Assembly: GCF_963676685.1 (NCBI RefSeq)
Contig: NC_092348.1
Span: forward strand, 3,596,001-3,660,000
Direction of reading: 5' to 3'
Source: Mytilus edulis
Taxonomy: Eukaryota
DNA: 64,000 bases
The notes under the pieces were generated by a model. It saw only the letters and a program-made list of their open reading frames with translations, searched no databases and was not told the origin of the DNA. Below, piece after piece: positions 6,631 to 64,000 of this stretch (its first letter is position 1; the number at the start of each line of letters is the position of its first letter). The translations under genes and the position numbers were made by a program.

Positions 6631-6820
6631 GCTATTAGTAGATTAGGTAGTCAGCATATGAAGCAGGAGTGTGACACTTTGAGAACCAAAACTCTTGACC
6701 AAAGTAATCGGGAGATAATGCTAGACATCAAGAATGCATATGATGAAATAAGAGAGTTAAAACATTCAGTAGAGATATTGAAAAAATCAAGTGAAGATAC
6801 AGTACCTTGGAATGTTAGAG
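6631..6820 (+). CDS. NLR-like gene copy 1: coding exon (HEPN C-terminal helix and coiled coil)
   Basis: AG acceptor at 6629-6630, GTAAGT donor at 6821; 190 bp reading AISRLGSQHMKQECDTLRTKTLDQ...DTVPWNVR; same length and phase as paralogous exon 57991-58180; splices in frame to 9058. Confidence 0.9.
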
Positions 6821-9057: not shown

Positions 9058-12000
9058 CACAAATAAAGCAGATACTTGAAGAATGGAAGACAAATGATCA
9101 GATGTATATAAACACCAACGGGGCAGAATATGCATTGAAATGTGTTAAGGAGAAGAGTTGTGTAACTATAACAGCAAGTTCTGGAGTAGGGAAGACAGCT
9201 ACTCTCCGACATGTAGCTTTACAGATGGCAGATGAAGGATACGATGTTCTCTTCGTGAATGAACCAGGTGAAATTGTCAGGTTTTACAATCCAAAGCAGA
9301 AAACATTGTTTGTGATAGATGATTTATGTGGAAACTATTCGTTAAGCCAAATTGACATGAAAAGGTGGGAACCTGTGATGGAACGTTTAGAGAATATTCT
9401 CCAAAAACAAGAGACAAAGATCATTGTCGCATGTCGATTGCAGGTATACCAGGATAACAAGTTTGAATCTTTATCGTTATTTAAGTCATGTGTCTGTAAC
9501 CTGTTATCAGAACTTTTGCGTTTGTCAAAGACTGAAAAACAATTAATAGCTGAGTTATATCTTGGAACAAAAGCTCCACAAGTTATTGGTTATTATGATT
9601 ATCATGATTGTTTTCCCCTTATATGTAAATTGTACAATGACAAATCTGATATGAATATTACAAACTTTTTTCAAAATCCATTTTCAGTTTACGAAGAAGA
9701 GATTGAGAAGCTATCAAAAAAGGGGTACTATGCAAAATATGGTGCTTTGGCTTTATGTGTCATGTTTAACAACAGAATAAATGAAGAAATATTGATAGAC
9801 GATATAGACGACGACACAACATCCGTCATCGAACACACATGTGAGGCATGTAGACTTGACAAAGGGACATCAAGACTTATCTTGAAAGATGAACTCGATT
9901 CATTAATACATACGTATATCAAAAAAGAACAAAATATCTATAAAAGTATACATGACAAAGTATTTGACTTTCTTACTTTTCATTTCGGACAGAAAATAAT
10001 CCAGTGTTTAATTAAGTATGCACATAAGAGGTTGATCTGTGAAAGATTTATATTAGAAAAACAAGATTCTGACCAGTTTATAATAGTTGTGCCTCCTAAG
10101 TTTCATCAAATGTACATACAAAGGTTGATTAACGACTGGTCAAAGGGAATAGTAAATGAAGTATTTTGTAATACCAATATGAATAGTTCACAGTTTAGGA
10201 AAAGATTTTTATGTTTTGTGAATGACCTGGATATATCCTACCAGAGACAATTAGCACATACCTGTGATGTGGAAAACCAAGATACAGCACTGTTACTATC
10301 TTGTTTTGATGGTGATATTCCTATGATTCAATGGTGTTTTAAACATAATGTTGATTGTAATCTATATAGAAATGATGAAACAACTCCTATGGAGATAGCT
10401 GTCCAACAAGGACATACAGAAATAGTACGGGTGTTGTTAGACAGAGGAGTACATTATGATAAATGTAACAATGATGGTTTTTCACCTCTGATGACTGCTT
10501 GTAGCAATGGTTATACAGATATAGTCAATGTTTTGTTAGAAAAAGGAGCAGATTATAACAAATGTCACAATAATGGTTGGTCTCCTGTAACGATGGCCTG
10601 TGGAAATGGGCATTCAAAAATAGTAAAATTGTTTATAGACCATGGCGTTGATTATAACGAATTTGACATAAACCATTCTTCACCCCTAATGATTGCTTGT
10701 GACAATGGACACACAGAAATAGTACGGATGTTGTTAGCTACAGGTGTGGAGTATGTCAAATGCAATATTTATAATTGGTCACCTCTCATGTCTGCCTGTA
10801 AACTTGGATATACTGAAATAGTTGGGATGTTGTTAGAGCAAAGAATAGATTATGATAAATGTAACGAAAGTGATTGGTCACCTATTATGTTTGCTTGTGA
10901 AAACGGACACACAGAAATTGTACAGATGTTGCTTGACAAAGGAGCAGATTATGATAGATGTAACAATAATGAAAGTTCGCCTTTAATGTATGCTTGTAAA
11001 AATGGACATACAGACATAGTAAGGATGTTGTTAGATAAAGGAGCTGATTATGAAAAATGTGATAGAGATTCATTGTCACCATTAATGTTTGCCTGTAACA
11101 AAGATCACATAGAAATAGCTCGGATGTTTTCAGAGAGAACAGCGAGTTATGATATAAGTGGTTGGTCACTTTTAATGTATGCTTGCGACAAAGGACATAC
11201 AGAAATTGTAATGATGCTGTTGGACAAAGGAGCAGATTTTGATAAATGTAACAAAGATGGTAGTTCCCCTTTAATGTTTGCCTGTAGAAATGGACATACA
11301 GAAATAGTAAGAATGTTGTTGGATAGAGGAGCAGAATATGATAGATGTAACAATAATGCAAGCTCGCCTTTAATGTTTGCTTGTAAAACTGGAGATGCCG
11401 AAATAGTAAGGATGTTGTTAGATAAAGGATCAGATTTTAATAATTGTGATAAACATGAGAGGTCACCTGTAATGTTTGCCTGTGATAATGGATTAACGAC
11501 AATAGTAAGGATGTTGTTAGATAGAGGAGCAGATTATGAAAAATGTGATAAAGATGGTTGGACACCATTAATGTTTGCCTGTAACAAAGAACACATAGAA
11601 ATAGCTCGGATTTTGTTAGACAGAAGAGCGAATTATGATAAAAGTGACAAATGTGGTTGGTCACATTTAATGTATGCTTGCGACAAAGGACATACAGAAA
11701 TTGTAGTGATGCTGTTGGACAAAGGAGCAGATTGTGATAAATGTAACAAAGATGGTAGTTCACCGTTAATGTTTGCCTGTAAAAATGGACATACAGATAT
11801 AGTAAGGTTGTTGTTGGAAGGAGGAGCAAATTATGATAAATGTAACAATGATGAACAGACACCTTTAATGTGGGCTTGTAAAAAAAGATATACAGAAATA
11901 GTTAAAATGTTATTAGACAAGGGAGTAGATAATAATAAATGTAACAATGATGGACAGTCACCTTTTATGTGGGCTTGTAAAAAAGGATTTACAGAAATAG

Positions 12001-15000
12001 TTGAAATGTTGTTTGACAAAGGAGTGGATTATAATAAATGTAACAATGATGGACAGTCACCTTTTATGTGCGCTTGTGAAAGTGGAAATAAAGAAATAGT
12101 TAAAATGTTGTTAGACAAAGGAGTAGATTATAATAGATGTGACAATGTTGGACAGTCACCTTTAAGGTGGGCTTGTGAAAAAGGATATACAGAATTAGTG
12201 AAAATGTTGTTAGACAAAGGAGTAGATTATAATAAATGTAACAATGATGGACAGTCACCTTTCATGTGCGCTTGTGAACATGGATGTAAAGAAATAGTTA
12301 AAATGTTGTTAGACAAAGGAGTAGATTATGATAAATGTGACAATTATGGACAGTCACCTTTCATGTGCGCTTGTGAAAATGGATATTTAGAAATAGTTAA
12401 AATGTTGTTAGACAGAGGAGCAGATTATAATCAAAGTAACTTTCATGAATGGTCACCTTTAATATTTGCCTGTGCCATTGGACATACACAAATAGTTAAA
12501 ATGATTTTAGACAAAGGAGGAGATTATGATAAATGTAACAATGATGAACAGACACCTTTAATGTTGGCTTGTAAAAAAGGATTTACAGAAATAGTCAAAA
12601 TTTTGTTAGACAAAGGAGTAGATTATAATAAATGTAACAACGATGGACAGTCACCTTTTATGTGCGCTTACGAAAATGGATATAAAGAAATAGTTAAAAT
12701 GTTGTTAGACAAAGGAGTAGATTATGATAAATGTGACTATGATGGACAGTCACCTTTTATGTGGGCTTGTGAACAGGGATATACAGAAATAGTTAAAATC
12801 TTGTTAGACAAAGGAGTAAATTATAATAAATGTGACAATGTTGGACAGCCACCTTTAATGTGGGCTTGTGAACAGGGATATACAGAAATAGTTAAAATGT
12901 TGTTAGACAAAGTAGTAGATTATAATGAATGTGACAATGATGGACAGTCACCTTTAATGTGGGCTTGTGTAAAAGGATATACAGAAATAGTTAAAATGTT
13001 GTTAGACAAAGGAGTAGATTATAATAAATGTGACAATAATGGACAGTCACCTTTAATGTGGGCTTGTAAAAAAGGATATACAGAAATAGTTAAAATGTTG
13101 TTAGACAAAGGAGCAGATTATGATAAATGTAACAATGATGGACAGTCACCCTTTATGCGTGCTTGTGCAAATAAACATAAAGAAATAGTTGAAATGTTGT
13201 TAGACAAAGGAGTAGATTATGATAAATGTGACAATGATGGACAGTCACCCTTTATGTGCGCTTGTGCAAATGCATATAAAGAAATAGTTAAAATTTTGTT
13301 AGACAGAGGAGCAGATTATAATAAATGTGACAATAATGGATGGTCATCTTTAATATTTACCTGTGCCATTGGACATACACAAATAGTTAAAATGTTGTTA
13401 GACAAAGGAGCAGATTATGATAAATGTAACAATGCTGGAGAATCACCTTTAATGTGCGCTTTTGAATATGGACATACAGAAATAGTTGAAATGCTGTTAG
13501 ACAGAGGAGTTGATTATGAGATATGGGACAAAAATAAAAAGACACCTTTAATGTGTGCGTGTGCCAATGGACACACAAAAGCAGTAAATATGTTGTTAGA
13601 CAGGGGCGTAGATTATAATAAATGTAACAATTATGGACAGTCACCTTTTATGTGCGCTTATGAAAATGGATATAAAGAAATAGTTAAAATGTTGTTAGAC
13701 AAAGGAGTAGATTATAATAAATGTAACAAATATGGACAGTCACCTTTAATGTGCGCTTGTGTAAATGGATATATAGAAATAGTTAAAATGTTGTTAGACA
13801 AAGGAGTAGACTATGATAAATGTGACAAAAAGGGACAGTCACCTTTAATGTGCGCTTGTGTAAATGGATATCTAGAAATAGTGAAAATGTTGTTAGACAG
13901 AGGAGCAGATTATAATCAAAGTAACATTCATGAGTGGTCACCTTTAATATTTGCCTGTGCCATTGGACATACACAAATAGTTAAAATGTTGTTAGACAAA
14001 GGAGGAGATTATGATAAATGTAACAATGATGAACAGACACCTTTAATGTTGGCTTGTAAAGATGGATTTACAAAAATAGTTAAAATGTTGTTAGACAAAG
14101 GAGTAGATTATAATAAATGTAACAATTATGGACAGTCACCTTTTATGTGCGCTTATGAAAATGGATATAAAGAAATAGTTAAAATGTTGTTAGACAAAGG
14201 AGTAGATTATAATAAATGTGACTATGATGGACAGTCACCTTTAATGTGCGCTTGTGAAAATAGATATAAAGAAATAGTTAAAATGTTGTTAGACAAAGGA
14301 GTAGATTATAATAAATGTGACTATGATGGACAGTCACCTTTAATGTGCGCTTGTGAAAATGGATATAAAGAAATAGTTAAAATGTTGTTAGACAAAGGAG
14401 TAGATTATGATAAATGTAACAATGATGAACAGACACCTTTAATGTGGGCTTGTAAAAAAGGATTTACACAAATAGTTAAAATGTTGTTAGACAAGGGAGT
14501 AGATTATGATAAATATGACAATTATGGACAGTCACCTTTAATGTGCGCTTGTGAAACTGGATATATAAAAATAGTTAAAATGTTGTTAGACAGAGGAGCA
14601 GATTATAATAAATGTGACAATGATGGACAGTCACCTTTAATGTGCGCTTGTGAAAATGGATATATAGAAATAGTTAAAATGTTGTTGGACAAAGGAGTAG
14701 ATTATGATAAATGTAACAATGATGGACAGTCACCCTTTATGTGCGCTTTTAAAAAGGAATATAAAGAAATAGTTAAAATGTTGTTAGACAAAGGAGTAGA
14801 TTATGATAAATGTGACAATGATGGACAGTCACCTTTAATGTGCGCTTGTGAAAATGGAGATATAAAAATAGTTAAAATGTTGTTAGAAAGAGGGGCAAAT
14901 TATAATCAAAGTAACATTCATGAATGGTCACCTTTAATATTTGCCTGTGCCATTGGACATACACAAATAGTTAAAATGTTGTTAGACAAAGGAGTGGATT

Positions 15001-15650
15001 ATGATAAATGTAACAATGTTGGAAAGTCACCTTTAATGTTCGCTTGTGAAAATGGATGTACAGAAATAGTTGAAATGTTGTTAGACAGAGGAGTTGATTA
15101 TGAGATATGGGACGAAAATGAAAAGACACCTTTAATGTGTGCGTGTGCCAATGGACACACAAAAGCAGTAAATATGTTGTTAGACAGAGGAGTAGATTAT
15201 AATAAATGTAACAATGATGGACAGTCACCTTTTGTGTGCGTTTGTACAAATGGATGTACAGAAATAGTTAAAATGTTGTTAGACAAAGGAGTAGACTATA
15301 ATAAATGTAACAATGATGGACAGTCACCTTTAATGTGCGCTTGTGAAAATGGATATATAGAAATAGTTAAAATGTTGTTAGACAAAGGAGTAGATTATGA
15401 TAAATGTGACAATGATGGACAGACACTTTTAATGTTGGCTTGTAAAAAAGGATTTACAAAAATAGTTAAAATGTTGTTAGACAAAGGAGTAGATTATAAT
15501 AAATGTAACAATTATGGACAGTCACCTTTTATGTGCGCTTATGAAAATGGATATAAAGAAATAGTTAAAATGTTGTTAGACAAAGGAGTAGATTATAATA
15601 AATGTGACTATGATGGACAGTCACCTTTAATGGTCGCCTGTGAAAATTGA
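9058..15650 (+). CDS. NLR-like gene copy 1: terminal exon encoding a STAND-class (nSTAND3-like) NTPase and 54 complete ankyrin repeats
   Basis: TTTTAG acceptor at 9056-9057 in frame with the 2182-aa ORF; Walker A VTITASSGVGKT, Walker B LFVIDDLCG, sensor-1-like KIIVACR, CFP at the GxP position; ankyrin repeats from 10281; ends at a TGA that replaces a Gly codon. Confidence 0.92.
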
Positions 15651-16770
15651 TATATAGAAATAGTTAAAATGTTGTTAGACAAAGGAGTAGATTATGATAA
15701 ATGTGACAATGATGGACAGTCACCTTTAATGTGCGCTTGTAAAAATGGATATATAGAAATAGTGAAAATATTGTTAGACAGAGGAGCAGATTATAATCAA
15801 AGTAACATTCATGAGTGGTCACCTTTAATATTTGCCTGTGCCATTGGACATACACAAATATTTAAAATGTTGTTAGACAAAGGAGGAGATTATGATAAAT
15901 GTAACAATGATGAACAGACACCTTTAATGTTGGCTTGTAAAAAAGGATTTACAGAAATAGTTAAAATGTTGTTAGACAAAGGAGTAGATTATGATAAATG
16001 TAACAATGATGGACAGACACCTTCAATGTGGGCTTGTAAAAAAGGATTTACAGAAATAGTTTAAATGTTGTTAGACAAAGGAGTAGATTATAATAAATGT
16101 AACAATGATGGACAGTCACCTTTTAATGTGCGCTTGTGAAAATTGATGTACAAAAATAGTTAAAATGCTGTTAGACAGAGGAGTTGATAATGAGATACGG
16201 GACAAAAATGAAAAACACCTTTAATGTGTGTGTGTGCCAATGGACAAACAAAAGCAGTAAATATGTTGTTAGACAGAGGAGTAGATTATAATGAATGTGA
16301 CAATGTTGCACAGACACCTTTAATGTACACCTGTATACATAGACAAACAGAAATAGTAAACATTTTGTTAGACAGAGGAGTCGATTATAATAAATGTGAT
16401 AAGGATGGACAGTCACCTTTAAATTGCGCTTGTGCCAATGGACACAAAGATATTGTTATAATCAATGTAACAAGGATAATCAGACACCTTTAATATGTGC
16501 TTGTTGACATGGTCATTTAGAAATCGTAGTAATATTTTTAGACAAAGGAGTAGATTATAATAGAAGTGAAAGTGATGATCAGACACCTTTGATATCGGCC
16601 TGTGCTTATGGACATACATAAATAGTAAACCTGTTGCTAGACAGAGGTGTACTGACGTAGTCATGATAATGTTCGACAGTGAAGTATATTATAACAAATG
16701 TAAAAATGCTAAACCGACACTTTATGCGTGATTGTGCTAACGGACACACAAAAATCGCACCCTTGCTCTA
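10281..16770 (+). repeat. Coding tandem array of 99-bp ankyrin units (about 65, including degenerate units after the stop)
   Basis: Strict 99-bp phase checked at 11856, 12450, 13341, 13935, 14925 and 15816; one early unit is 9 bp short; consensus QSPLMCACENGYxEIVKMLLDKGVDYNKCNNDG. Confidence 0.95.
15651..16770 (+). pseudogene. Decaying ankyrin units downstream of the copy 1 stop codon
   Basis: In-frame continuation to TAA 16062-16064, then a +1 T frameshift at about 16121, TGA 16144, further indels and an internal deletion near 16455. Confidence 0.85.
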
Positions 16771-18661: not shown

Positions 18662-18799
18662 TTATGCTTAATAAACTCTCAAAGTCCATTTCTCTAGGAT
18701 GTCAACTTACAAATTTCCATATATGGGTACAATCAGTCGAAATATCAATGTCAAAAAATAATGCTGTGTCAAAACTATATCGTCCCATAACTCTTGTAT

Positions 18800-20003
18800 T
18801 CAATTCATTGGTTTACTTCGTATTTAGCTGATAGACATCAAGTAGTATCAATTTCAAATACTTTTTCAGATGTATCTACATTAAAAGCAGGTGTAGCTCA
18901 AGGGTCCGTTTTAGGTCCTATATTATTCTTAATATTTATTAATGATTTGCCTTTGTGTAATCCTAATCCTAATCTTGATCTTTTTGCTGATGATAGCACT
19001 ATTTCTGTAATTGGAAAAGACAAAAGGTATATTATTCAGACACTCAATGTTGTATTAGAAAATATTTGTCAATGGGTTGATGAAAACAAAATGTTAGTTA
19101 ATGTGTCAAAAACTAAGACAATGTGTATAGGTTCAAAACAAAAACTGTCTGTGATGTGTAATGACACATTAAATGTATCCATTAATGGCCAAAAGGTTAA
19201 TGAAAGTCACTGTGAAAAAGTCCTGGGTATTTTTGTTGACAAAACTCTTTCTTGGTATGATCAAATTAATCATATAATCAAAAAGTTAATTCTTCATTAG
19301 CTTTATTAAAAAGAATCAAGAAATACTTGAATCACAATGCACGAATTCTATTTTACAATGCGTATATTCTTCCACATTTGGATTACTGCTGTTCAGTATG
19401 GGGAAACTGTAACAAGTTTTTAGTTGACAGTTTACTAAAATTGCAAAAAAGGGCAGCTAGAATTATTTTTAACGAACACGATATTCGTAAACCATCTTTT
19501 GAACTATTTAAGGAATCTGGAATTATTCCTGTTACTAAGAGAATATTTGACCACAAATCATTATTAATGTATAAATCAAAACACCAACTGGCACCAAAAT
19601 ATTTATCCAATCTTATTGTGCCTACAAGTAGTAAACAATCGTACAATACTCGGCTTTCATCATCGGATAATTTTATTGTCCCTAAATCAAATACAGAATT
19701 ATACAAATCAAGTTTTTCTTTTAGTGGTCCAAAAATGTGGAATTCACTGTCCAGTGAAATTAAAAAATCAAAAGGTATATCTGCATTCAAAAACTCTTAC
19801 AAGTCATTTTATTTTTAAAAGTGTTGAATTTATAAGTTAAGGCACAATGTATACCATAGTTGTTTTTGTTGTTGTTGTTATATTACTTTATATAGGTCTA
19901 TTGTTTACATGTGTGTTATAGTAGATTAATTATTATTTTATTCATATTGTTAACATTGTATATGTAGAGAGCCTTATTGAAAATTGTTTTAATCCAAATG
20001 AGC
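18800..20003 (+). mobile_element. 5'-truncated CR1/L2-type LINE (RT domain and 3' UTR) running into the gap
   Basis: WFTSYLADR, GVAQGSVLGPILFLIFINDLP, LFADD, YILPHLDYCCSVWG, LQKRAARII, GPKMWNSL; one frameshift in an A-run at about 19280; absent from duplication copy B. Confidence 0.9.
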
Positions 20004-20145
20004 NNNNNNNNNNNNNNNNNNNNNNNNNNNNNNNNNNNNNNNNNNNNNNNNNNNNNNNNNNNNNNNNNNNNNNNNNNNNNNNNNNNNNNNNNNNNNNNNN
20101 NNNNNNNNNNNNNNNNNNNNNNNNNNNNNNNNNNNNNNNNNNNNN
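20004..20145. other. Assembly gap (142 N)
   Basis: Run of n characters. Confidence 1.
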
Positions 20146-26356: not shown

Positions 26357-28983
26357 CGGATAATTTAACCAAATTCTATTAGAGGAAAAAGTACCATCAA
26401 CGTTTAAAACCGGAACAGTATCTCCGATTCTGAAGAAAGGAAAGGCATTCTATGAGGTAGAAAATTACCGTGGTATAACAGTCACATCAGTTATTGGAAA
26501 AGTATTTGAATATATCATTTTGGATAAATCTAACTTAATGAAATCGGGTCAATCTCCTTTACAGTTTGGTTTTACACAAGGACTATCTCCAAACATGGCA
26601 GCCCTAATACTTTCGGAGGCATGCTCAGAGATAACAGGAAAACAAACCATTTTCGTCACAACACTCGACAGTCAAAAAGCATTTGATGTTGTAAGTCACG
26701 TAATACTGATGGACAGGCTATATCACTACGGACTAAATCTGAATTTGTGGAACATTATCGAGGAGCTATATAGCGGCGTAACATCAACAGTAAAATGGAA
26801 AGGAGAAACAAGTACAAGCTTTGAAATACACCAGGGCGTGCGACAAGGAGGTGTCCTATCTACTCACCTATATAAGGCCTACATAAACGAACTGCTTCTA
26901 GATCTGCAAAAACGAAATCTAGGTTCTCATATAGGCAACAATTATGTTGGATGTCCTGCTTGCGCAGATGATATCGTACTTTTATCCCTCAATAGAGAAG
27001 AAATGCAAGAAATGCTGAATATTGTCGATAATTACTCAAAAGACCATCGATTTAACATCCATCCTCAAAAGAGTAATGTTATAATAAAGACTGGAAATAA
27101 ACGTAAAGATCCTGAAGATAGCGATGCTTTTAAAATGGGGAACAATGATTTAAATTGTACGGATCGTACAACCCACCTAGGCCTAACAAGATCAACAAAA
27201 GATGAAACCCGAATAAATGTAGATGATCGCATAAGTTTAGCCAGAAGAACATTATACTCTCTCATAAAGACTGGTGTACATGGCTCAAATGGTTTAAATC
27301 CTAAAACTTCATATAGGATCTATCAAGCATACGTCCTACCAAGGCTACTGTACGGGCTTGAAACTCTACATGTGAATTCTAAAGAAATGTCGCTTCTTTC
27401 AAGCTTCCACCTCGATACCTTGAGAAAACTTCAGTCTCTTCCGAAAAGGACAGCATGTGCATCAGTATACCTACTTCTGGGAGCTCTACCGCTTATTGCT
27501 GAAATTCACAAAAGACAACTTAGCCTCTTATTTGGTGTGCTCAATAGCGACAATGAAACTATTAGATCACTAGCTATGCGTCAATATATGTCCGGAAGAT
27601 CAACAAGCTTCTTCACCAAAACAGCAGAAATTTTAGAGATGTACAACCTACCTTTCTTTCTGGAATTATGCGAAAAGAAGTATTCAAAAATAGAATGGAA
27701 AAAACGGACAAAATCAGCAATAAACGGTCATTGGACTAACAAACTACGCCTAGAATGTGAAGAAAAATCAACTCTACAAAATTTAACAATTTCGAACTTA
27801 ACAATAGGTGTCACACATCCTGTTTGGGCTACAGTTTCTTCATCAGTCTCGGACATTAGAAAAGCAATTACAAAAAGCCGCATGTTAACGGGAACCTATC
27901 TATTACAAGCTCATAGACACAGATTTAACCAGGCCGAAGTAGACCCGATTTGTCCAAACTGTAGAACTGAGAACGAAGACCTATGTCATGTGTTAACAAC
28001 TTGTCCATTGTATATGAACATCAGGATAGCGTTATATACTCCAATTAAGAACTTTATAGTGAGTATTATATCTGAATCAACATGGGCAACTCACTTCAGT
28101 AACCGTGAGGCAATATGTACACTTATAGTAGACTGTCAAAGCTTCGCAAATCTGAACATTATACCGAACAACCCAGAAATACTTGGAAAGATTGAAAATA
28201 TGTCCAGAATATACTGCTATGAAATTCACAAAAAGAGACTATCAACCGAGATATAACATTTCCCTGGGTATCACAGCTCCCCATAAAGACACTAATAACA
28301 ATATTTACCACCATGTGTCTATATCTGATATATATCATAAATAGTAAAATAGTTGCCGTAATTAAAATACTTTAGTGTGATGTTTATGCATAAATATTTA
28401 GAACGTTAATATCTGCTTGCTTAACTATAATATACACCATATATACAAGCCTGAACGTGTGTACTGTGCAAGACTTTAAAATTTGAGTACAATGTAGAAC
28501 TAACTCTTATAACGCAAAAATATATCATTGCTTATTAACAAAGATATCAACATTAGATAGAAAATAACCATCTGTAGCATCCTCTAAATGCATAGTATTT
28601 TAGCTTGCACTTCTTGGCTCCCATATGAATGAAGACCTTTTAATTCATTAACTCTATCCAGTGAATTCAACAGCCAAAATAGTTAATTGATCTTATTTAA
28701 CTAGACATTACTTTTATCACCGTATCTACATCCTGGATAACGGAGGAATCTACCTGAACAAAACAGAACCTGGATAATGAATGGGTAATCCGTGTATATA
28801 ATATGTACATTTCTGTAAATAAATTTTGTGCATGTGCAACGTTCTGGTGGAGGATTTCATTACAATTTGGAATAACTTGTGGATATTATAACATTTTTAA
28901 AAACTAATCCGTTAAGGAAACACAGCTAGCTGTGTGTGCTCCAACACTGGAGGGATTTACATAAAGAAGAAGAAGAAGAAGAA
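26357..28983 (+). mobile_element. Young 5'-truncated non-LTR retrotransposon (RTE-X-like) with an intact RT and CCHC finger
   Basis: Frame open from 26364 to 28256: ENYRGITVTS, QFGF, LDSQKAFD, GVRQGGVLS, CADD, C-terminal CPNC...H...C; about 700-bp 3' UTR ending in a (GAA)n tail at 28966-28983. Clade call is tentative. Confidence 0.88.
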
Positions 28984-54272: not shown

Positions 54273-54489
54273 ATGGCATCACTTTCACCAGAAGAAGAAA
54301 ACTTTGTGAGACTTAACTTGTTACTGACAGGAATTTCTCCTCGCGCAGTGCGTACCTTGTTTGATTATGAATTTGCTCCAGTTTGTCTAGATGCAACACT
54401 GAAGAAAGAGTTCAACAAACTGAGAGATCTTCAAAAGAAACGTGTAATTAATCAGTCGCAGTGGAACTTACTGACCCCAAGGTTTCCTG
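54273..54489 (+). CDS. NLR-like gene copy 2: first coding exon (N-half of DZIP3-type HEPN)
   Basis: AAAATGG start context; MASLSPEEENFVRLNLLLTGISPRAVRTLFDYEF...INQSQWNLLTPRFP; GTAAGT donor at 54490 (phase 1); candidate acceptor TTTTTCAG at 54093 implies an upstream non-coding exon. Confidence 0.85.
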
Positions 54490-55846
54490 GTAAGTACATA
54501 TAAACCGGGTTATTGCCTTACTTACTCAATCTTTTGTTTTCTATGTTGTGTTTTGTTTACTATTGTTTGTCTCTTGGTATTTTTTTGTTTTTAGCCATGG
54601 CGTTGTTAGTTTATTTTCGACTTGGAAGTTTAAATGTCCCTTTGGAATGTTTCGTATCTCTTTTATCCCTACATTTCTTGGTAAGTATGTAGAATTATAC
54701 AAGTCATAGTGGAACTAATTTATCCCTAGACTTCCTGGTGAGTTCAGAGACACAAGCAGCTAAATGATAGTTACAGTAGAAATAACTTTTCGCTAGATTT
54801 CGTTGTTAGCACCGTCAAAAATTTTAAATATCAAATATCTACGTATAGTGGTATCAGTTAATATTTTTGCAATCAAAATTCATCAGAAATCTAGGAAAAG
54901 TTGTAAAAGAGAGGCGAATATAAATAAATAAAACAGTTACAAGGACAACAACTTACGATGTTGTTGACATGTTACAAAGACATAAACATGATATGTTCAT
55001 TTTATTTTAATTTCGTTAGAGTGCATATAAATTGAACTAAAAATGCACATATAAAGGCCATCTAATGTAGATCAGAATTGGAAATGCCAGGAACTAATAA
55101 ATGATGGTATAATAAGGTTTTTTTTTGTTCCATTCAGATAACATATGCTATCTATAACAACTTAATTGTACATTTTGTTGCTATTTCATCTAGGCGTACA
55201 AAATTTGTCTATGATGAGTTTATTTCCGTATTGTTCAGGAACCTTTTTACAAATGAAGAACATAAATCTTTTTTTTTATTAACAACATAATAATATTTAT
55301 TTATCTAATCTTGTTTGTTACAAATTTAACCAAGAGTCCTACAACGTAAATCTTCTTAATAAAGGCAACAGTAGTATACCGCTGTTCGGTAGTCATAAAT
55401 CGATTGAAAGGGGGAAAATCAGGGGAAGACGAAACGCGCGATTGGCGTACTAGATCATAATCCTGGTACCTTTAATAACTATTTACAAACCAATACTGAA
55501 GGAAACACATCAACTATAAGATGAAAACAACGAAACAATAGAAACAAAAAGTGCAACAAAAAACAAAACTTCAATGCAACAAAATATACTCATGGACCGA
55601 GCATCTCGCGCTTTTGTGTAAATTTTGAATATAACACTAAAATGACAACGTTACATGACAGGACTACAGTAAAAATAAATGCAAGAACATTCAGGACAGA
55701 AATATACACAACTAAACATTACAATAGGACATTTCGACATGCTAATAATAATTAAAGGTACCAGGCTGATAGTTTAATACACCATACGTACAAACTTACA
55801 AACTTCTATAGATACTGCTGTACTTATATATTATTATTTCCCCCAG

Positions 55847-56076
55847 ATTCTCCAGATTCCAAGAACTTTGATGTTACTCTAATGAGTTTACTTCTAAGAA
55901 ATCTCACAACAATAGCCCCTCCTCATGGAGGGTATGACAATTTGCCTTCATCATCAGAAACGACACCTGCTGCTGACTTGGCCAGAATAAAGTATTACAG
56001 AAATGTCCTCGCTCATCTAGATGATGGTAATATACAGAATACCGAGTTTTCCGCAGCATGGGATGATATTACTGGT
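55847..56076 (+). CDS. NLR-like gene copy 2: second coding exon (HEPN core with RNVLAH)
   Basis: CCCCAG acceptor, in frame with exon 1; DSKNFDVTLMSLLLRNL...ADLARIKYYRNVLAH...AWDDITG; GTAAGC donor at 56077 (phase 0). Confidence 0.88.
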
Positions 56077-56185
56077 GTAAGCAGCATTTAATTCATATTT
56101 TTCTAGTTAAAATTTTTTGTTATGGTCATGATAATATAATTCTGTGTTGTATATATTGAACATAGGGATACTACTATTGTCTTGA

Positions 56186-56420
56186 TAGTTATCAAAGGTA
56201 CCAGGATTATAATTTAGTACGCCAGACGCGCGTTTCATCTACATAAGACTCATCAGTGACGTTCACATCAAAATATTTATAAAGCCAAACTAGTACAAAG
56301 TTGAAGAGCATTTAGGATCCAAAGATTCAAAAAAGTTGTGTCAAATACGGCTAAGGTAATTTATGCCTGGGATAAAAAAAAATCCTAAGTATTTCGAAAA
56401 ATTCAAAGTTTCTTAAATTA
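56186..56420 (-). mobile_element. Partial retrozyme (TATGT-loop subfamily) with a hammerhead at 56219-56262, antisense in intron 2
   Basis: Minus strand ACGTCA-CTGATGA-GTCTTATGTAGAT-GAAA-CGCGCG-TC-TGGCGT; the stem II closing pair is G-U. Confidence 0.8.
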
Positions 56421-57990
56421 TAGATAAGACATCAAGAAATAAGAAATAGCTTTAGATCGATATAAAAAGATGTGGTATGATTGTCAATGAGACATAGTCA
56501 CAATTTGTATAAGTAACCCATTTAAAAGTGTGTTTAGGTAAAATAGCATTTTCACTCATTGCCCTCACGCGGTATTATTTTTTTTTTTTTTTATCTTTCT
56601 AACGTTCAATTTTTTATTCATGTTGAAATATCAAGATATGATATAGCACAGGGTTGAAAATTGAAACAGACACACAGTTAACGAGTTCTAGTTACATTAA
56701 TGCCCCCATGAAATTTTAATGTCTGAAATAGTCTAACGATTATTCAACTTTAGAAAATAAAATTGTCCTAAATTTCATATGTGGTGCAATGACGATAAAT
56801 GGCTTTGAACTGATCAAAATTTGTTGTTATCTGTGAGACAGATATTCCTAAACTGTTAACCAAATCTTAGTGGCAGTCAGAGAACTGTCGAAAGGGAACA
56901 TAAACTCTACCAGGGAACTTTGGTTCAAACGCTTCATTTCTTTAAATCCTTTATAGATTTGGAAAATCGTGTGACGAAAAAATGCCAATACTACTCACAT
57001 CTGTTTACTACCCTTTTTGTCAAAATTACTGTTCTAGGTAAGGTGCACAAGCAAACAATGTTAACAACGCCACATCCATGTTAGTTTTTTCGTTTGAATT
57101 GTTTACATTGTCATTTCGGACCTTTTATAGCTGACTATGCGGTATAGGCTTTGCTCATTGTTGAAGGCCGTACGGTGACCTATAGTTATTAATTTCTGTG
57201 TCATTTTGGTATCTTGTGGAGAGTTGTCTCATTGGCAATCATACCACATCTTCTTTTTAATACATTAAGTATGTTCCCGTTACATATCAGGCGCCTGTAA
57301 TTCAGTGGTTGTCGTTCGCTTCTATAAATCATATTTGTTGTTCATTTATTGTTTTATATCAGTAATCCGATTGTTAGGTTTTTTTTCATGTGGATGGTTT
57401 TACTTTTGTATTTTTGGGGTAACTTAATGTAGCAGGAGCAATTCTGCTGGAGATTCGGGGTTGCGAACCACAGCTTGTAGACTTCTACTCAAGTTGAAAA
57501 CAGGTTAAACAGGAAATGATGTATTTTCCATAAGTACCAAAATTTCACAAAAAAAAATTCATTGTAACGATAAGCGAAATAATTTACTTTGGAGATGCAA
57601 ATGGATAAATTTGGACTACTTTGTTTTATATTTTAATGTGTGGATGCATCATGTCAAAGTCTTATTGCATTTTAGTTAATGTGTTTAGAGATTGTAAGTA
57701 ATAAGATTTCTATAAAAAGCAAAACTCGTAAATCAAAGAATACAAAGTCGATTACATGTGAATTAGTTCCTCTCTTGGTATGATTCTTATTTTGTGGGCT
57801 CCAACTGTCAAAAGTCCCTTTAAAGTGTAAGCGAAAACAAGAGATAATGTCGTTGATGTAACGGCTCTCATGTGCCTCCCTTTCATGAACAAATTATTTT
57901 ATTATTTAAATTTTTACATGTAGTTACCACTTGTGTTCATGATTTTGATGAAAAATATTTATCCATGCATACTCCTTTGTACAATTGTAG

Positions 57991-58180
57991 GCCATTAGTA
58001 GATTAGGTGGGCAACATATGAAGCAGGAGTGTGACAATTTGAGAACCAAAACTCTTGACCAAAGTAATCGAGAAATAATGCTAGATATCAAGCATTCAAA
58101 TGATGAAATAAGAGAGTTAAAGCAGTCAGTAGAGATTTTGAAAAAAGTCAGTGAAGATACAGTACCTTGGAATGTTAGAG
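57991..58180 (+). CDS. NLR-like gene copy 2: third coding exon (coiled coil)
   Basis: TTGTAG acceptor, GTAAGG donor at 58181; AISRLGGQHMKQECDNLRTKTLDQ...VPWNVR; paralogous to 6631-6820. Confidence 0.9.
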
Positions 58181-59889
58181 GTAAGGCTATTTTGATTTAT
58201 GTAGGAAAGTTTCTACAAGGAAAATCACAGAATACGAAACATATAAAATTATTAACTTTTGGTGTCAGCATAAACAATTAAAACTTTGTAATTCAGAAAG
58301 GAAAATACGTCATGCTTTGTATGCAGTTACCTAGTTTTGCGAAGTTTTTGTCTGTCATATGTTCTTTCATGTTCAGAGACTGCTTGAATGTATTTTTTAG
58401 TGTTTTTGTCATGTGAAATACGCATTGATGATGTGAAATTGAATTTATATAGTTGGAATATGTGATCCTTGCAAATTCTAAATGTCCGTCTTTCAAGGTA
58501 TATCCGGTGTCGTCTTCATTTTGTGGTCAGTGATCAATGTCAAGTTTTTGTGCTCAAGTCGTTATCAACTATATTTGTTCCATGGAATAATCTTAACAGG
58601 TACGACTGATTCGCGACCCCAACCTAAGCTCTAAGCTAGTATAGTTTTGTTTGTTACCATGAAACTATAATCTGTCTGTTAACTATATTTGTTGTACGGC
58701 AGGATTGTATGAGATGCATGTCTCATTTGCAGGGTGATTATTTCTTTTTCGCATGCTATCAAGAGTTAGTCTGACAATATGAGGTGTATAGTATGAATGC
58801 GATCATGATAACTACATATGTAAAACCGTCAAACATTTAGTTTGTGCACTCTTGTGCTTACTGCTCACTGAACAATGGTTGTACTGTGAAAGACAAGTGG
58901 TAATTATGAAGCTCTATTAATATTTGGATGTCGGTTTAATATCATGAAGTATCAGAGTAGTTATCAAAAGTTCCATGGAATGTTAGATAACAACAAATTC
59001 TTGGAATAGATCTAGTCTTCAATTATTGTAGATACTGTTGATTTTAAACGATCTTAATAACTAGGAGTATAGTGTTATATCTATATATATAATAATTGTT
59101 ACCTAAAAATACCAGAAATAAGCAACGTTACCTCATAGGTTAACCTTTTGCATATTAGAAATTAACAAATTATAGGTCATCATTGATTCCTATGTATGAT
59201 AGATGTAAGGCTTAGAATGCTCTTCAACTTTGTAATAGTTTACCTTTATAACTATTTTAATGTGAGCGTCACTGATTATGTAGACGAAACGTGCGTCTGG
59301 CGTATTAAATTGTAAGAACGATCCCTTTGATTATTATAAGAAGTTTTTAAATGGCAGAATTTGCACGCTGATTTGTGTCGATATCATGGCAAGTTTAAAA
59401 TGATTTTTGGAAACATGTAAAGTTAAATGTTAAGATTTGGAGGTTTATGTTAAACGAAAAACACTACTTACAATCACTATTAGATGTTTATAGCAATAAC
59501 TTGCTTTTTAAAAATTGCTTCAAATTGAACACTTTCTTATAATACACATAAAAGTTTAATACGAACAAGCACAACACATAACAGCAACACTATTAATAAA
59601 AAAACAAATCATACATAGAGGGTATCATATGGTATTTTATAAAGGACAAGCTAATATACAGGTCCGAGACTGCTATTATTTCGTAGTGCATTTCTTTTAG
59701 AACATAAATGAAAATTTAAAAAAAAATCACCTGCGGTTTCTCAATAATTTTTTTACAGTGTGTTTTACTACTTATGGGACAAATTATATCAAAATTATAG
59801 AAAACCTCATCGGCTCTAACTCAAAATATGGACAATATTATGTTTAGGGGGTCTTGAAATCTTTTGACAGCTTCAAAAGTGCAAATTTC

Positions 59890-60063
59890 TGTATTTGGCA
59901 AAACTTTTAGGAATTTTGGTCCTCAATGCTCTTTAACTTCGTACTTTATTTGGCATTTTTAACTTTTTTTGGATTCGAGCGTCACTGATGAGTCTTTTGT
60001 AGACGAAACGCGCGTCTGGCGTATATACAAAGTTTAGTCCTGGTATATATGATGAGTTTATTT
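59890..60063 (+). mobile_element. Partial retrozyme (TTTGT-loop subfamily), sense orientation in intron 3 of copy 2
   Basis: Reverse complement of about 22146-22315; interrupts another repeat. Confidence 0.85.
59979..60022 (+). ncRNA. Type I hammerhead ribozyme, intact core
   Basis: GCGTCA-CTGATGA-GTCT(TTTGT)AGAC-GAAA-CGCGCG-TC-TGGCGT; predicted cleavage after 60016. Confidence 0.88.
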
Positions 60064-60491
60064 TCTCACCTTTTTCAGCTGGACCAAATAACTACTTCCC
60101 TTTAAAATTCTGGACCCATTTTTTTTCAATGTAATTTTAGCCCCTACTTGCAATTTGAGGCATAAAACATGGAGAAATAAATTTGGAAGGGGATACAAAA
60201 AATTGGCAAGTAACCCACTGTCAACAATAGGGTCTACATTCGTGGAAAATGAAAATCAAGGGACGACAATTGTGGTCTAGGACCTAACAACATAAGTAGT
60301 TTCTTATAAACTAACTCGTAATAGATACCACGATAAATATTTTGTACGCCAGACGAGTGTGTCTTCTAAAAAAAACCTCATCAGTGGTGCGATTGTTTCT
60401 AGTGTAACAAGTTATCATATTTCCTTAAGAACAATAAACACTTAAATGCAACTTGATTGCAATTCTTTAGTTTTCTATATTATGTCATGTA

Positions 60492-60943
60492 TATGGAACG
60501 GGGACCCAATTATTTGCCCCATTGGAACGCATTAAAAATCATAGTAAATACATAGGGTCTTATTCAATAAAGAATGTTGATAGCCACCTTGGGACTTCTG
60601 GTTCATGTTAGGCATTCATTTTGAAGTGTCTAAGTACAATCTCAGTGCCTCATGACCGGCATTCCGTTGCAACATTTTGTTTTTATTGACAACAGGGTCA
60701 GTCTGTCTACTTCCGGGGAAAAATAAAGGCTAGAATTTAGGCAATTTACTCTATGTACCGACGCCAGATTACATTTACAGAAATTCAAACTAGAAAGCCT
60801 ACCCTTTCAAATAAATCTACATTCAGTTACAGAACTAGTGAAATAATAACACTATACAATTTATAACAAAAGTTATATATTTTTTTTAAGAACTACATTC
60901 GTGGGTACCGGACTGGTTGCCCTAACTGGGATCCTATTCCATA
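60492..60943. mobile_element. MITE-like element inserted in a Penelope-like tail fragment
   Basis: Imperfect 21-bp inverted termini TATGGAACGGGGACCCAATTA / TAACTGGGATCCTATTCCATA flanked by TA; the host repeat resumes at about 60945. Confidence 0.6.
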
Positions 60944-62463
60944 TACTATTGTTTGTCTGTTTGTCTTTCTCATTTTTAGCCATGGCGTTGTCAGTTTATT
61001 TTTGATTTATGAGTGTAGCTGTCCCTATGGTATCTTTCGTCCCTTTAGAGACCCCACTTTCAGATTCAGTACAAGGCTTAAATCTCCGACAGACAACACT
61101 GTAATGTTTTGTTTATATGACGGCTTTAAATGTATCCGTTTCCTCATTTGTTATAAATCTGCAACAAAAATATTATTTTCAAAATGTGCAACCTAGATAT
61201 GACTAAAACTGATACTGAATTTTATGGTAAATTCTAAATAGGTTGAGATTAATTTAGATTAGCATGGGCCATGTTATACTGTTCAAACTACTTTGCTGGA
61301 CGTTATAGTTTCTACGTTATTAACTTTAAAAACGTTTTCAGCTTTTTGAATTAGCGATGAAATAGGTTAAGTTAAAGGTACACATCTCATACGCTAACTT
61401 TACATAGATTGTGGTACTGGAGAAGAAACAAACTTCTCTTAATACAGTAACATTTACAGATAAAAACATTCAAATGCATTCACTTATAAACCTGTATAAA
61501 ATAATTATCAGATTTGATAAAGGACAAGGTTCACTTATGGCACAAAATGACCTAAAATATCTACTTTGTCATAGAACACCAGAGAGGTCACAAATAGGTT
61601 CGTTAATGGGTCTATTTCAAAAGCCTTAATGCTAAATAAATCAGTTCTTTACATAAAAGTACATGATATTCTCCAAAGTTAGACCATTTTGAACATTTTG
61701 TCAAAACATGATGATTTTGTACAATTTTTATATCTAAAAGTTTAAAAACACTTTGGCCGCCACCTACGATCCAAAATATTTTGTTACCAAAAGATTCCAA
61801 ATTTGATATAGAATTCATCAATACAATTTTTTGGATCTTGGACGGCGGACAAGGATAATTATGACAAAAACAATAACCAAAATGGTAAAAATTTACGATT
61901 TAAAAAAATAAAAAAAAATTTAGGGCCAATTTCGTGAACCTTCTCCTTTATTCTCTTTTTTATCTATTAACTACTCAATAACGAAATTGAAAAGGGAATT
62001 GAACTGACCTTGGCATTGATCAAACACAGTTTCCTTCTATAGTTTTAATAAGATACGATGTAAAATGGACATACCTAAGTAGAGAATACATTGGCTAAAA
62101 AGGTAACATTGCCCCAAAGACTCTGATTTCTTAATGCATGCTTCTGTTTCAAGACACAAAATACGTGTTTACTTTTGTCATGACACTTTTTCAGTAAATT
62201 TAGAGGGTTTGTAATCAAACACAATCACATGCTATGCAAGTTTTTTTCTTTCTCCACTTGCCAATGATTCCCATTTAATCATAGGTTTCGTATCAGAATA
62301 TTTCTTTCATGAAAACTGGTTAACATGTATCTAACATTTAATATACATAAAAGGTGTAAAAAAAATTTCAATGAAATTAAATGTTGTTTTATTACAGAGG
62401 GAAACATTGAGTCATTAAAATAAATTTCAAACTTGATAATGTAAACATTTTATTGTATTATAG

Positions 62464-63518
62464 CACAAATCAAACAGATACTTGAAGACTGGAAGGAAAC
62501 GGATCAAATATATGTAAACACCAATGGAGCTGACTATGCACTAAAATGTATAAAGGAGAAGAGTTGTGTAGTTATAACTGCAAGTTCTGGTGTAGGGAAG
62601 ACAGCAACTCTCCGACATGTGGCTTTACAGATGGCAGATAAGGGATACGATATTCTTTTGGTGAATGATCCAGGTGACATTGTCAAGTTTTACAATCCAA
62701 AGCAGAAAACATTGTTTGTGATAGATGATTTATGCGGAAACTATTCTTTCAACCAAATTGACATGAAAATTTGGGAACCTGTGCTGGCACGTTTAGAGGA
62801 AATTCTTCAAACACAAGTGGTAAAGATTATTGTTGCATGTCGATTGCAGGTGTACCAGGATAACAAGTTTGAAACTTTATCTTTATTTAAGTCATGTGTC
62901 TGTAACCTGTTATCAGAGACATTATGTTTGTCGAAGACTGAAAAAAGGTTAATTGCTGAGTTATATCTCAAAACAAAAGCTCCTAAAGTTACTAAATATT
63001 ATGATTTATATGATTGTTTTCCACTGATATGTAAACTGTACCATGACAAATCTGATATGGATATTACAAACTTTTTTCAAAATCCCTTTTCAGTTTACGA
63101 ATCAGAGATTGAGAAGCTGCCAAAGAAAGGATGTAACGCAAAATATGGTGCTTTGGCTTTGTGTGTAATGTTTAACAACAACATAAAGGAAGAATTATTG
63201 ACAGACGATTTAGACGAAGAAACATTAGCTATCATTGAACACACATGTGAGGCATGTAGACTCGACAAAGGGACATCGAGACTTATCTTGAAAGATGAAC
63301 TAGATTCATTAATGCATACATATATAAAAAAGGAACAAAATATTTATAAAAGTATACATGACAAAGTGTTTGACTTTCTAACTTTTCATTTCGGACAGAA
63401 AATAATCCAGTGTTTAATTAAGTATTCACATAAGAGGTTGATCTGTGAAAGATTTCTTTTAGAAAAACAACAAGATTCTGACCAGTTCATAATAGTTGTG
63501 CCTCCTAAGTTCCATTAA
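62464..63518 (+). CDS. NLR-like gene copy 2: fourth coding exon, STAND NTPase up to a premature stop
   Basis: TATAG acceptor at 62462-62463 in frame with exon 3; VITASSGVGKT, LFVIDDLCG, IIVACR; the spliced product would be 563 aa; TAA at 63516-63518 aligns to CAA (Gln) in copy 1. Confidence 0.85.
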
Positions 63519-64000
63519 ATGTACATGGAAAGGTTGGTTAACGACTGGTCAAAGGGAATAGTAAATGAAGTATTTTGTAATACGAATATGAACATTCCTA
63601 AATTCAGGATAAGATTTTTAAGTTTATTGAATAGATTGGACAAATGTTACCAAAGACGTTTAGCACATACCTGTGATTTCGAAAACCAAGATACTGCACT
63701 GTTGTTGTCTTGTTTTGATGGTGATATTCCTATGCTTAGATGGTGTTTTCAACATGAAGTTGATTGTAATGTATATAGAAATGATGAGACAACTCCTTTG
63801 GAGATAGCTGTTCAACAAGGACATACAGAAATAGTAAGGATGTTGTTAGACAGAGGAGTAGATTACAACAAATGTAACAAAGATGGGTGGTCACCTATGA
63901 TGACTGCTTGTAGCAATGGTAATACAGATATAGTCAATGTTTTGTTAGAGAAGGGAGCCGATTATAATACATGTCACAATAATGGTTGGTCTCCTGTAAT
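63519..64000 (+). pseudogene. Open in-frame continuation of copy 2 (linker and first ankyrin repeats) beyond the premature stop
   Basis: MYMERLVNDWSKGIVNEVFC...DTALLLSCFDGD...TTPLEIAVQQGH...WSPMMTACSNG with no further stop up to the window end; closely paralogous to about 10110-10590. Confidence 0.8.

Follow-up and report, generated by a model that had tools for sequence, protein, structure and literature searches.

A damaged copy from a large HEPN-STAND-ankyrin gene family of the blue mussel, Mytilus edulis

Overview

The locus that begins at position 54273 of the window (the whole 64,000-nucleotide stretch of DNA analysed here) is one damaged member of a large, lineage-specific family of HEPN-STAND-ankyrin genes in the blue mussel, Mytilus edulis. 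It was originally predicted to encode a ligand-gated RNase immune receptor, but no HEPN-STAND-ankyrin polypeptide can be made from this copy because a TAA codon at 63516 closes the frame ahead of the ankyrin repeats and a frameshift follows later in the array. We consider it probable that the family works by a STAND-receptor mechanism in its intact copies and that the 54273 copy, given the TAA and the frameshift in its ankyrin array, is a young pseudogene or null allele. It is reasonable to read the intact members as NLR-like receptors whose effector is a HEPN RNase, a reading that has already been published.

Such members carry an N-terminal HEPN domain of the DZIP3/hRUL138 type, a short coiled coil predicted to dimerise, an nSTAND3 P-loop NTPase and a long ankyrin array of variable length, and would operate in the STAND receptor mode of NLRs, Apaf-1 and bacterial Avs. 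The ankyrin array would keep the NTPase off until a ligand binds; nucleotide-dependent oligomerisation would then bring the HEPN domains, paired through their coiled coils, into an active arrangement, and RNA would be cut. We infer these steps (ligand gating, oligomerisation and RNA cutting) from the families involved; no functional or biochemical work on any family member, whether on RNase or NTPase activity, oligomerisation or ligand, was found in the literature searched. In the 54273 copy a recent CAA-to-TAA change at 63516 would end the protein after the NTPase module, and the locus could at most yield a sensor-less HEPN-coil-STAND protein of 563 aa or the annotated coil-STAND protein of 405 aa.

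Exon structure and domain content

All features described here lie on the forward strand. Exon 1 (54273-54489) opens with an ATG at 54273, ends at a GTAAGT donor at 54490 and encodes the N-terminal helices of a HEPN_DZIP3 domain; taken alone it matches Pfam PF18738 at E 1e-3 (profile positions 4-34), and the N-terminus of the annotated Mytilus protein P0001 is 81% identical to it. The core of the domain lies in exon 2 (55847-56076), identified by junction comparisons and by its own match to PF18738 (E 1.6e-25, 90 bits against a curated cut-off of 27, profile 30-113). Within it, at 55999-56016, the predicted RNVLAH, the Rx4H motif of HEPN nucleases, is read intact. Exon 3 (57991-58180), 14 residues shorter than its equivalent in P0001, supplies the last HEPN helix and a short coiled-coil linker; the coiled coil that had been proposed is present as a short helical stretch, its one line of backing being the dimer model of a homologue described below.

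The first part of exon 4 (62464-63515) encodes an nSTAND3 P-loop NTPase followed by a helical region. The match to PF20720 covers profile positions 1-154 of 155 (E 3.3e-26, 92.3 bits against a cut-off of 27.2), with a Walker A motif SSGVGKTA at 62583-62606, a Walker B motif TLFVIDDL at 62709-62732 and a sensor-like arginine in VACRLQV, all three being invariant columns across 14 paralogues. Ankyrin families are matched in exon 4 at E 1e-18 to 1e-24. The HEPN, STAND and ankyrin domains called originally are thus all present above curated Pfam cut-offs, but the TAA at 63516-63518 breaks the frame between the last two.

The four exons join in frame as predicted, through three canonical GT-AG introns in phases 1/0/1, and the joined frame stays open for 563 codons up to the stop at 63516; at each of the three junctions the residues are identical to those of annotated Mytilus proteins (P0001, P0002, P0003, P0005 and P0202). 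The Pfam searches were run exon by exon, the count of codons and stops being the sole operation on the joined sequence, and no protein reading through the stop was used in any search. An NLR- or Avs-like layout lacking NACHT and LRR had been expected, and this is what the best matches, nSTAND3 and ankyrin, indicate: neither NACHT nor LRR families matched any exon at E up to 0.1, and kinase and KEN families matched none. Sequence and profile searches of solved structures returned generic P-loop matches for the STAND module and none for the HEPN exon, and Rfam at gathering thresholds found nothing between 54000 and 64000.

The premature stop and the frameshift

An in-frame TAA lies at 63516-63518, between the STAND module and the ankyrin repeats. 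Its counterpart in the neighbouring paralogue is CAA (Q) at 10107-10109, while P0218 has Q and P0001 has E at this position. Thirteen of the 16 STAND-ankyrin exons examined read through the boundary, and the 54273 copy is the only one with a stop exactly there; an uninterrupted polypeptide from STAND into repeats is found in the neighbour and in 12 of the 14 other paralogues. With three of 16 copies disrupted, the locus illustrates the birth-and-death turnover of the family. (The original prediction was silent on the broken state of this copy.)

The same frame resumes directly after the stop with a linker and the first ankyrin repeats (63519-64000, from the open reading frame and Pfam), and stays open past the end of the window to L001:3376, a run of 1286 aa with about 37 repeats. 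A frameshift about 3.35 kb beyond the window end (near L001:3350) breaks the end of the array, and some 3.5 further repeats follow it, to L001:3711; the array as a whole extends 3.7 kb past the window. As it stands in the assembly, then, with both a TAA and a frameshift, the copy is not an intact protein-coding gene. The public annotation of the locus, P0180, is a 405-aa coiled-coil/STAND protein with neither HEPN nor ankyrin, which starts at the ATG at 58018 in exon 3 and ends exactly at the TAA. Against the neighbour, dN/dS is 0.15-0.28 in every part of the 54273 copy; as it stays this low even in the 160 codons beyond the stop, the lesion appears to be young, and the sequence comparison suggests that it arose recently.

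The same figures bear on whether the gene might be intact elsewhere in the population. The TAA would then be a consensus artefact or a null allele, either rare or heterozygous, and a full receptor of about 1,900 aa would be encoded by the other haplotype. The value in the 160 post-stop codons (0.28) is not above that of other parts, the 1286 codons after the stop are open, the conserved HEPN and NTPase residues are all retained, and a close relative from M. galloprovincialis has Q at the TAA codon; strong haplotype differences are, moreover, known in mussel immune-type families (for the pearl oyster case, see PMC9646362). Such an intact haplotype nevertheless seems to us rather improbable. A contig built from reads of run X1 agrees with the assembly throughout 63396-63567, TAA included, no run has an alternative letter at 63516 among the rows listed, the public annotation stops at the TAA, and there is the second lesion near L001:3350. 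Run X1 and the assembly may derive from one individual, in which case the TAA could represent a single allele at a heterozygous position.

The neighbouring paralogue and the family in the genome

The paralogue predicted about 50 kb upstream was found at 53 kb, with an exon 3 at 6631-6820 (88% amino-acid identity) and an exon 4 at 9058-15647, the two being 84-91% identical in DNA to those of the 54273 copy. Its exon 4 runs from STAND straight into about 60 ankyrin repeats in a single open frame of 2203 aa; beyond a stop at 15648 that frame continues into more repeats, as far as about 16650. That this neighbour might be without a HEPN head was considered and rejected, its HEPN exons having been located 16.5 kb ahead of its exon 3, which puts them beyond the window, some 10-11 kb before its start.

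In a search of the M. edulis genome, at least 150 HEPN exon 2 matches were scored out of 352 candidates (148 stop-free), along with at least 40 STAND loci, 27 of which are preceded by a HEPN exon in the same orientation. Many short models with nSTAND3 only, or with HEPN and nSTAND3 only, also appear in Mytilus annotations. The family comprises hundreds of animal genes that combine a conserved HEPN nuclease motif with an NTPase of the Pfam family of bacterial Avs5, and it deserves experimental attention. The truncated 54273 locus is a poor entry point; better ones are the neighbour (9058-15647) and those copies on other chromosomes that are intact.

Expression and a possible truncated product

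Truncated NLRs in plants act as regulators or decoys. A comparable use can be imagined for the 563-aa or 405-aa product of the 54273 locus, which would pair through its coil or NTPase with full-length relatives. The locus is indeed annotated as a 405-aa protein, short models are numerous in Mytilus, as noted above, and a homologue is predicted to form a coiled-coil dimer; contigs from the possible RNA run X15 cover exon 4 only, at a depth of 2-5. We regard this as very unlikely, however. In draft annotations a short model is often just a fragment, neither junction reads nor coverage of exon 3 were seen, and the low post-stop dN/dS indicates that selection acted on the ankyrin part until recently, which is unexpected for a long-standing truncated form. 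Equally far-fetched, in our estimation, is a natural split in which the truncated protein is expressed, pairs with full-length relatives such as the neighbour and tunes or primes their RNase output, and in which, more broadly, the intact members would be the first nuclease-bearing, Avs-like STAND receptors of animals.

RNA-seq reads across the junctions had been put forward as a check on the gene model, and here the prediction gained nothing: no read crossed the predicted splice junctions in the runs examined, and in the part of run X22 that was read (about 6%; raw RNA from a sister species) none of the reads fell on exons 3 or 4. The absence of junction reads is no proof of silence.

Relationship to known receptor systems

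The architecture had been thought to be known only from automated bivalve annotations. This does not hold, and the receptor design is not new: papers of 2013, 2021 and 2022 set it out for this HEPN family. Anantharaman et al., 2013 (PMC3710099) described DZIP3/hRUL138 HEPN domains fused to ankyrin, NACHT, Death and LRR domains, with expansions in oyster and Nematostella; a 2021 survey of cnidarian receptors (PMC8260672) counted 17-83 HEPN-NACHT proteins per anthozoan; and Takeuchi et al., 2022 (PMC9646362) reported more than 50 HEPN_DZIP3-NACHT NLR-like genes in the pearl oyster, proposing RNA degradation as their role. These bivalve and cnidarian proteins share with the mussel copy the N-terminal HEPN family, including Rx4H with N after R, and with the mussel family a central STAND-class NTPase, C-terminal repeats and a strong lineage-specific growth in copy number in sessile marine invertebrates. 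The role hypothesised for them in print, RNase L-like or antiviral RNA degradation, is also the same. The mussel proteins differ in having an nSTAND3 NTPase in place of NACHT, ankyrin repeats in place of LRR, TPR or WD40, and an added short coiled coil between HEPN and NTPase; the 54273 copy is, in addition, truncated by its stop.

The mussel NTPase falls in nSTAND3 (PF20720), which is the NTPase family of Avs5 (bioRxiv 10.1101/2025.07.08.663546). Avs5 (AVAST type 5; SIR2 - nSTAND3 - TPR/Sel1/PPR) thus has this NTPase and the layout of effector, STAND and helical repeats in common with the mussel family, but its effector is SIR2 instead of HEPN, its repeats are not ankyrin, and it is prokaryotic with an experimentally shown anti-phage role. 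PADLOC matched PDC-S73 (1e-16) and mad8 on the mussel NTPase and no Avs model at E up to 0.01; with neither an Avs match nor a SIR2 effector, membership of Avs5 is not supported for the mussel proteins. Should ligand-gated RNA cleavage prove true, animal and bacterial STAND immunity would be linked via an enzyme effector.

RNase L (ankyrin - pseudokinase - KEN/HEPN RNase), whose RNase acts on dimerisation, likewise joins an ankyrin sensor to an RNase of the HEPN superfamily. Its domain order, however, is the reverse of that in the mussel, a kinase-like dimerisation module stands in place of the P-loop STAND NTPase, and its HEPN family is KEN where that of the mussel is DZIP3; the mussel exons do not encode the kinase-like and KEN succession of RNase L and Ire1. 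Canonical animal NLRs and Apaf-1 follow the same logic of effector, STAND NTPase and repeats as the mussel proteins, but with NACHT or NB-ARC, with LRR or WD40, and with effectors that are adaptors (CARD, PYD, Death) and not enzymes, and the mussel copy is not a canonical NACHT-LRR NLR.

The HEPN domain: nuclease or binding module

The domain takes its name from human DZIP3 (hRUL138), an RNA-binding ubiquitin ligase for which, to our knowledge, nuclease activity has never been reported. The mussel HEPN domain could similarly be an RNA- or protein-binding module with no nuclease activity, signalling occurring by scaffolding. RNA binding has been reported for the HEPN domain of sacsin (PMC13669270; bioRxiv 10.64898/2025.12.18.694329), and the predicted dimer discussed below leaves the motifs apart. 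A binding role is, on balance, unlikely in view of the conservation of the motif among paralogues, which had been predicted and is strong: RNxxxH is intact in all 30 of the closest HEPN copies, whose overall identity is only 63-73%, and R, N and H are each at least 90% conserved across 42 diverse homologues. The pearl oyster, too, keeps Rx4-6H in 194 of 202 copies (PMC9646362), and such conservation of catalytic residues is what Anantharaman et al. (PMC3710099) took to mark an active family. A nuclease effector, as proposed for the intact members, is the reading that we retain.

Oligomer modelling, suggested originally as a check, was carried out on the HEPN-plus-coil segment of a homologue and gave a mixed answer. 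The homodimer model reached an ipSAE of 0.47, against 0.00 for the best control, a mark that 21 of 30 proteins whose structures were solved as pairs attained, and none of 23 solved as single chains; three runs agreed in at least 94% of contacts, with a partner pLDDT of at least 86. The segment equivalent to exon 3 is predicted to form a parallel, in-register dimer, and most of the confident interface is coiled coil. The RNxxxH residues (125-130 of P0001) lie outside that interface, so that a composite HEPN active site is not supported by the model. An AlphaFold2 model of the STAND module built with 14 paralogues was too poor (pLDDT 48) and was left out of the fold search.

The HEPN model of homologue P0054 is all-helical (pLDDT 90.4). 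Searched against the PDB with Foldseek, the HEPN homologue model had no match at E up to 0.001. VIA-align of the P0054 model placed Cas13, Csm6 and AbiF in the top five, with Z of about 7.0-7.2, which is within helical-bundle noise.

A damaged copy of a HEPN-STAND-ankyrin gene

The locus at 54273-64000 (+) is a damaged copy of a HEPN-STAND-ankyrin gene, of a kind that has already been described computationally. Exon 1 (54273-54489, +) opens with the ATG at 54273 and runs for 217 bases to a GTAAGT donor; exons 2 (55847-56076, +) and 3 (57991-58180, +) each follow a pyrimidine tract and AG acceptor and end at a GT donor, and exon 4 (+), from 62464 onward, has the same kind of acceptor. The splice sites read as introns of phases 1, 0 and 1, and 563 codons are stop-free up to 63516 across the joined exons, which were used for this local count only, all searches at the locus being made exon by exon. 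The residues flanking the three junctions (marked here by a slash) -- PRFP/D.PDSK, AWD.IT./AISRLGG and VPWN.R/AQI..IL -- are matched in annotated Mytilus proteins, and these shared junctions, together with the GT-AG sites and the phases, bear out the four in-frame exons of the original prediction.

Using Pfam, exon 1 was matched to HEPN_DZIP3 (PF18738) at E 1e-3 over profile positions 4-34, and exon 2 to the same family over profile positions 30-113 at E 1.6e-25, its 90 bits far exceeding the cut-off of 27; membership of the HEPN family is thus confirmed at profile level, with the RNVLAH motif read locally as intact at 55999-56016 (+) in exon 2. Exon 4 matches nSTAND3 (PF20720) at E 3.3e-26 over profile positions 1-154 of 155 and carries SSGVGKTA as Walker A, TLFVIDDL as Walker B and an arginine in VACRLQV; the profile match and the two Walker motifs uphold the assignment to the STAND NTPases. 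Ankyrin families are matched downstream of 63519 in the same exon. The STAND and ankyrin domains that had been predicted are therefore both present, but they do not share one open frame, since a TAA at 63516-63518 lies between them; the earlier observation is partly confirmed, and its interpretation as a ligand-gated RNase immune receptor partly supported.

The stop codon and its age

The in-frame TAA, in the context PPKFH-stop-MYMERL, falls exactly where the NTPase module gives way to the ankyrin repeats. Past it the frame continues uninterrupted for 1286 codons, encoding about 37 ankyrin repeats, when L001 (the genome stretch past the window end, with its own numbering) is included; a frameshift near L001:3350 ends that frame, with about 3.5 further repeats in a different one. 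At the position of the TAA, Q is encoded in the neighbouring paralogue (CAA) and in a close M. galloprovincialis protein, and E in P0001, an annotated homologue from M. coruscus. Among 16 STAND-ankyrin exons examined in the genome, 13 read across the boundary, first stops lying 526-2686 codons past the STAND start; the other two besides the locus copy are broken elsewhere, so that only the locus copy has the boundary stop. A contig derived from the reads of run X1, whose animal may be the assembly's own, shows no difference from the assembly over 63396-63567, and the TAA is thus present in reads. The public annotation of the locus, P0180, is a 405-aa protein, 100% identical, with neither HEPN nor ankyrin: its start codon is the ATG at 58018 within exon 3, its junction between exons 3 and 4 is that of the four-exon model, and its last codon is followed by the TAA.

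Exon 1 gives a dN/dS of 0.15 against the neighbour; the values are 0.26 in exon 2, 0.21 in exon 3, 0.24 in the STAND part and 0.28 over the 160 codons past the stop, with dS between 0.28 and 0.69 across these comparisons. The value past the stop points to purifying selection on the ankyrin part for most of the time since duplication and hence to a young stop; the substitution pattern thus suggests that the lesion is recent, and the TAA could be one allele of a polymorphism. DNA runs with two other species labels contain about 0.8 of the sampled exon 4 words, so the locus is not private to one animal.

Reads were mapped over 57900-63899. Raw RNA reads of a sister species, sampled from about 6% of their run, left exons 3 and 4 uncovered, and a run guessed to be RNA gave contigs at depth 2-5 on exon 4 only, with none on exon 3 or unique intron. 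The RNA-seq junctions proposed as a check on the gene model were not seen in the runs over this interval, a result that speaks neither for nor against expression.

Family size and relation to known systems

Genome-wide, at least 150 scored matches to HEPN exon 2 were found among 352 candidates, 148 of them without a stop, along with at least 40 scored loci for the STAND part, 27 of which have a same-strand HEPN exon upstream within 60 kb. Loss of RxxxxH among paralogues had been set beforehand as a possible refutation; R-N-x-x-x-H is intact in 30 of the 30 closest exon-2 copies, at 63-73% identity, and R, N and H are each at least 90% conserved in 42 diverse homologues. A search of 1.84 billion cluster representatives gave 927 clusters at E up to 1e-3, and UniRef names for Mytilus proteins include "DZIP3-like HEPN domain-containing protein" and "Novel STAND NTPase 3 domain-containing protein". 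The HEPN_DZIP3 exon copies are tandemly clustered on several chromosomes (for example at C3:4.6-7.1 Mb, C6:5.8-6.4 Mb and C14:59.9-62.1 Mb), and across 16 copies the ankyrin array after the STAND exon is about 180 residues long at its shortest and about 2,340 at its longest.

The architecture had been thought known only from automated bivalve annotations; that does not hold, the HEPN family design having been published in 2013, 2021 and 2022, nor is the reading as a receptor with a HEPN effector a new one. Anantharaman et al., 2013 (PMC3710099) found that the DZIP3/hRUL138 HEPN family mostly keeps Rx4-6H (their Table 1), has animal members fused with ankyrin, NACHT, CARD, Death and LRR, and is expanded in Nematostella, oyster and Capsaspora; they discussed RNase L-like or antiviral RNA degradation for the animal HEPN-NACHT/Death fusions and noted HEPN-STAND proteins of bacteria. 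A 2021 survey of cnidarian receptors counted 17-83 HEPN-NACHT proteins per anthozoan (PMC8260672). In the pearl oyster, Takeuchi et al., 2022 (PMC9646362) described more than 50 HEPN_DZIP3-NACHT NLR-like genes, with Rx4-6H in 194/202 HEPN copies, and proposed degradation of viral and transposon RNA. The mussel protein differs from the published HEPN-NACHT receptors in that its NTPase is nSTAND3 and its sensor ankyrin. No functional study of any animal member was found in the literature searched. The nSTAND3 Pfam family also occurs in bacterial Avs5 (bioRxiv 10.1101/2025.07.08.663546); using PADLOC, the mussel NTPase matched PDC-S73 and mad8 and no Avs model, and Avs5 was set aside as its class.

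Structure models and proposed mechanism

For a 213-aa homologue in which the HEPN domain is complete, a confident, all-helical model was obtained (pLDDT 90.4, pTM 0.81). Foldseek found no match to it in the PDB; the top five in VIA-align include Cas13 (Z 7.2, rmsd 7.4, 118 aligned), Csm6 (Z 7.0, rmsd 4.2, 106 aligned) and AbiF (Z 7.0, rmsd 6.4, 152 aligned), all with Z within helical-bundle noise, which agrees with a HEPN fold but does not prove it. The STAND module model (pLDDT 48) was too poor for use. Sequence searches of solved structures detected no relative.

A homodimer model of P0001 residues 1-228 reached ipSAE 0.47 against 0.00 for the best control, a mark passed by 21 of 30 proteins solved as one-chain pairs and by 0 of 23 whose solved form is a single chain, though less often by eukaryotic proteins, and a pass may reflect model memory. 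The runs agreed in at least 94% of contacts, with partner pLDDT of at least 86. In the model the two chains meet along a parallel, in-register coiled coil (residues 174-218) and at a few HEPN residues; the model supports the coiled coil, which is 14 residues shorter at the locus than in P0001, as a dimerising element. The RNxxxH residues lie outside the confident interface, so that a composite HEPN active site is not supported by the model.

In members of the family that are intact, the NTPase would be held closed by the ankyrin array as long as no ligand is bound. Ligand binding would lead to nucleotide exchange and oligomerisation, through which the HEPN domains, paired by the coiled coil, would take up the arrangement of an active RNase and cut viral, transposon or host RNA. 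We infer this ligand-gated mechanism from established STAND and HEPN nuclease behaviour and from the strict conservation of the catalytic motif. The locus copy, being without a linked sensor, could not act as such a receptor.

The neighbouring paralogue and surrounding DNA

The paralogue predicted about 50 kb upstream does exist, with exon 3 at 6631-6820 and exon 4 at 9058-15647, the latter a single open frame of 2203 codons encoding STAND and about 60 ankyrin repeats; its HEPN exons, 16.5 kb upstream of exon 3, are not in the window. Past an in-frame stop at 15648 the frame goes on to encode more repeats, until other stops appear and the frame changes near 16430. This repeat-rich last exon (9058-16650 region, +) accounts for the strong GC skew seen at 10-16 kb. 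Between the two paralogues are an assembly gap (N run, 20004-20145) and RVT_1 open frames at 18794-19300 and 26520-28256 (+), which are retrotransposon remnants.

Several very high-copy repeats make up most of intron 3 of the locus (59100-61100), and both the DNA and the RNA runs show numerous alternative joints there; unique intron sequence is at normal depth. A full-length Hammerhead_1 (RF00163) match at 59979-60022 (+), with 32.5 bits against a gathering score of 34 and E 3.2e-06, falls within a repeat of extremely high copy number, where the summed word depth is 1e5-1e6 and unique sequence has about 6-20; raw RNA reads of the sister species cover it at depth of about 77-103. The match has the look of a repetitive element carrying a hammerhead and not of a piece of the gene. 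Three 33-residue ankyrin units at L001:1472-1967 (1.5-2.0 kb beyond the window) are identical in protein sequence, two adjacent and the third three units further on, a pattern that fits recent unequal crossing-over within the array.
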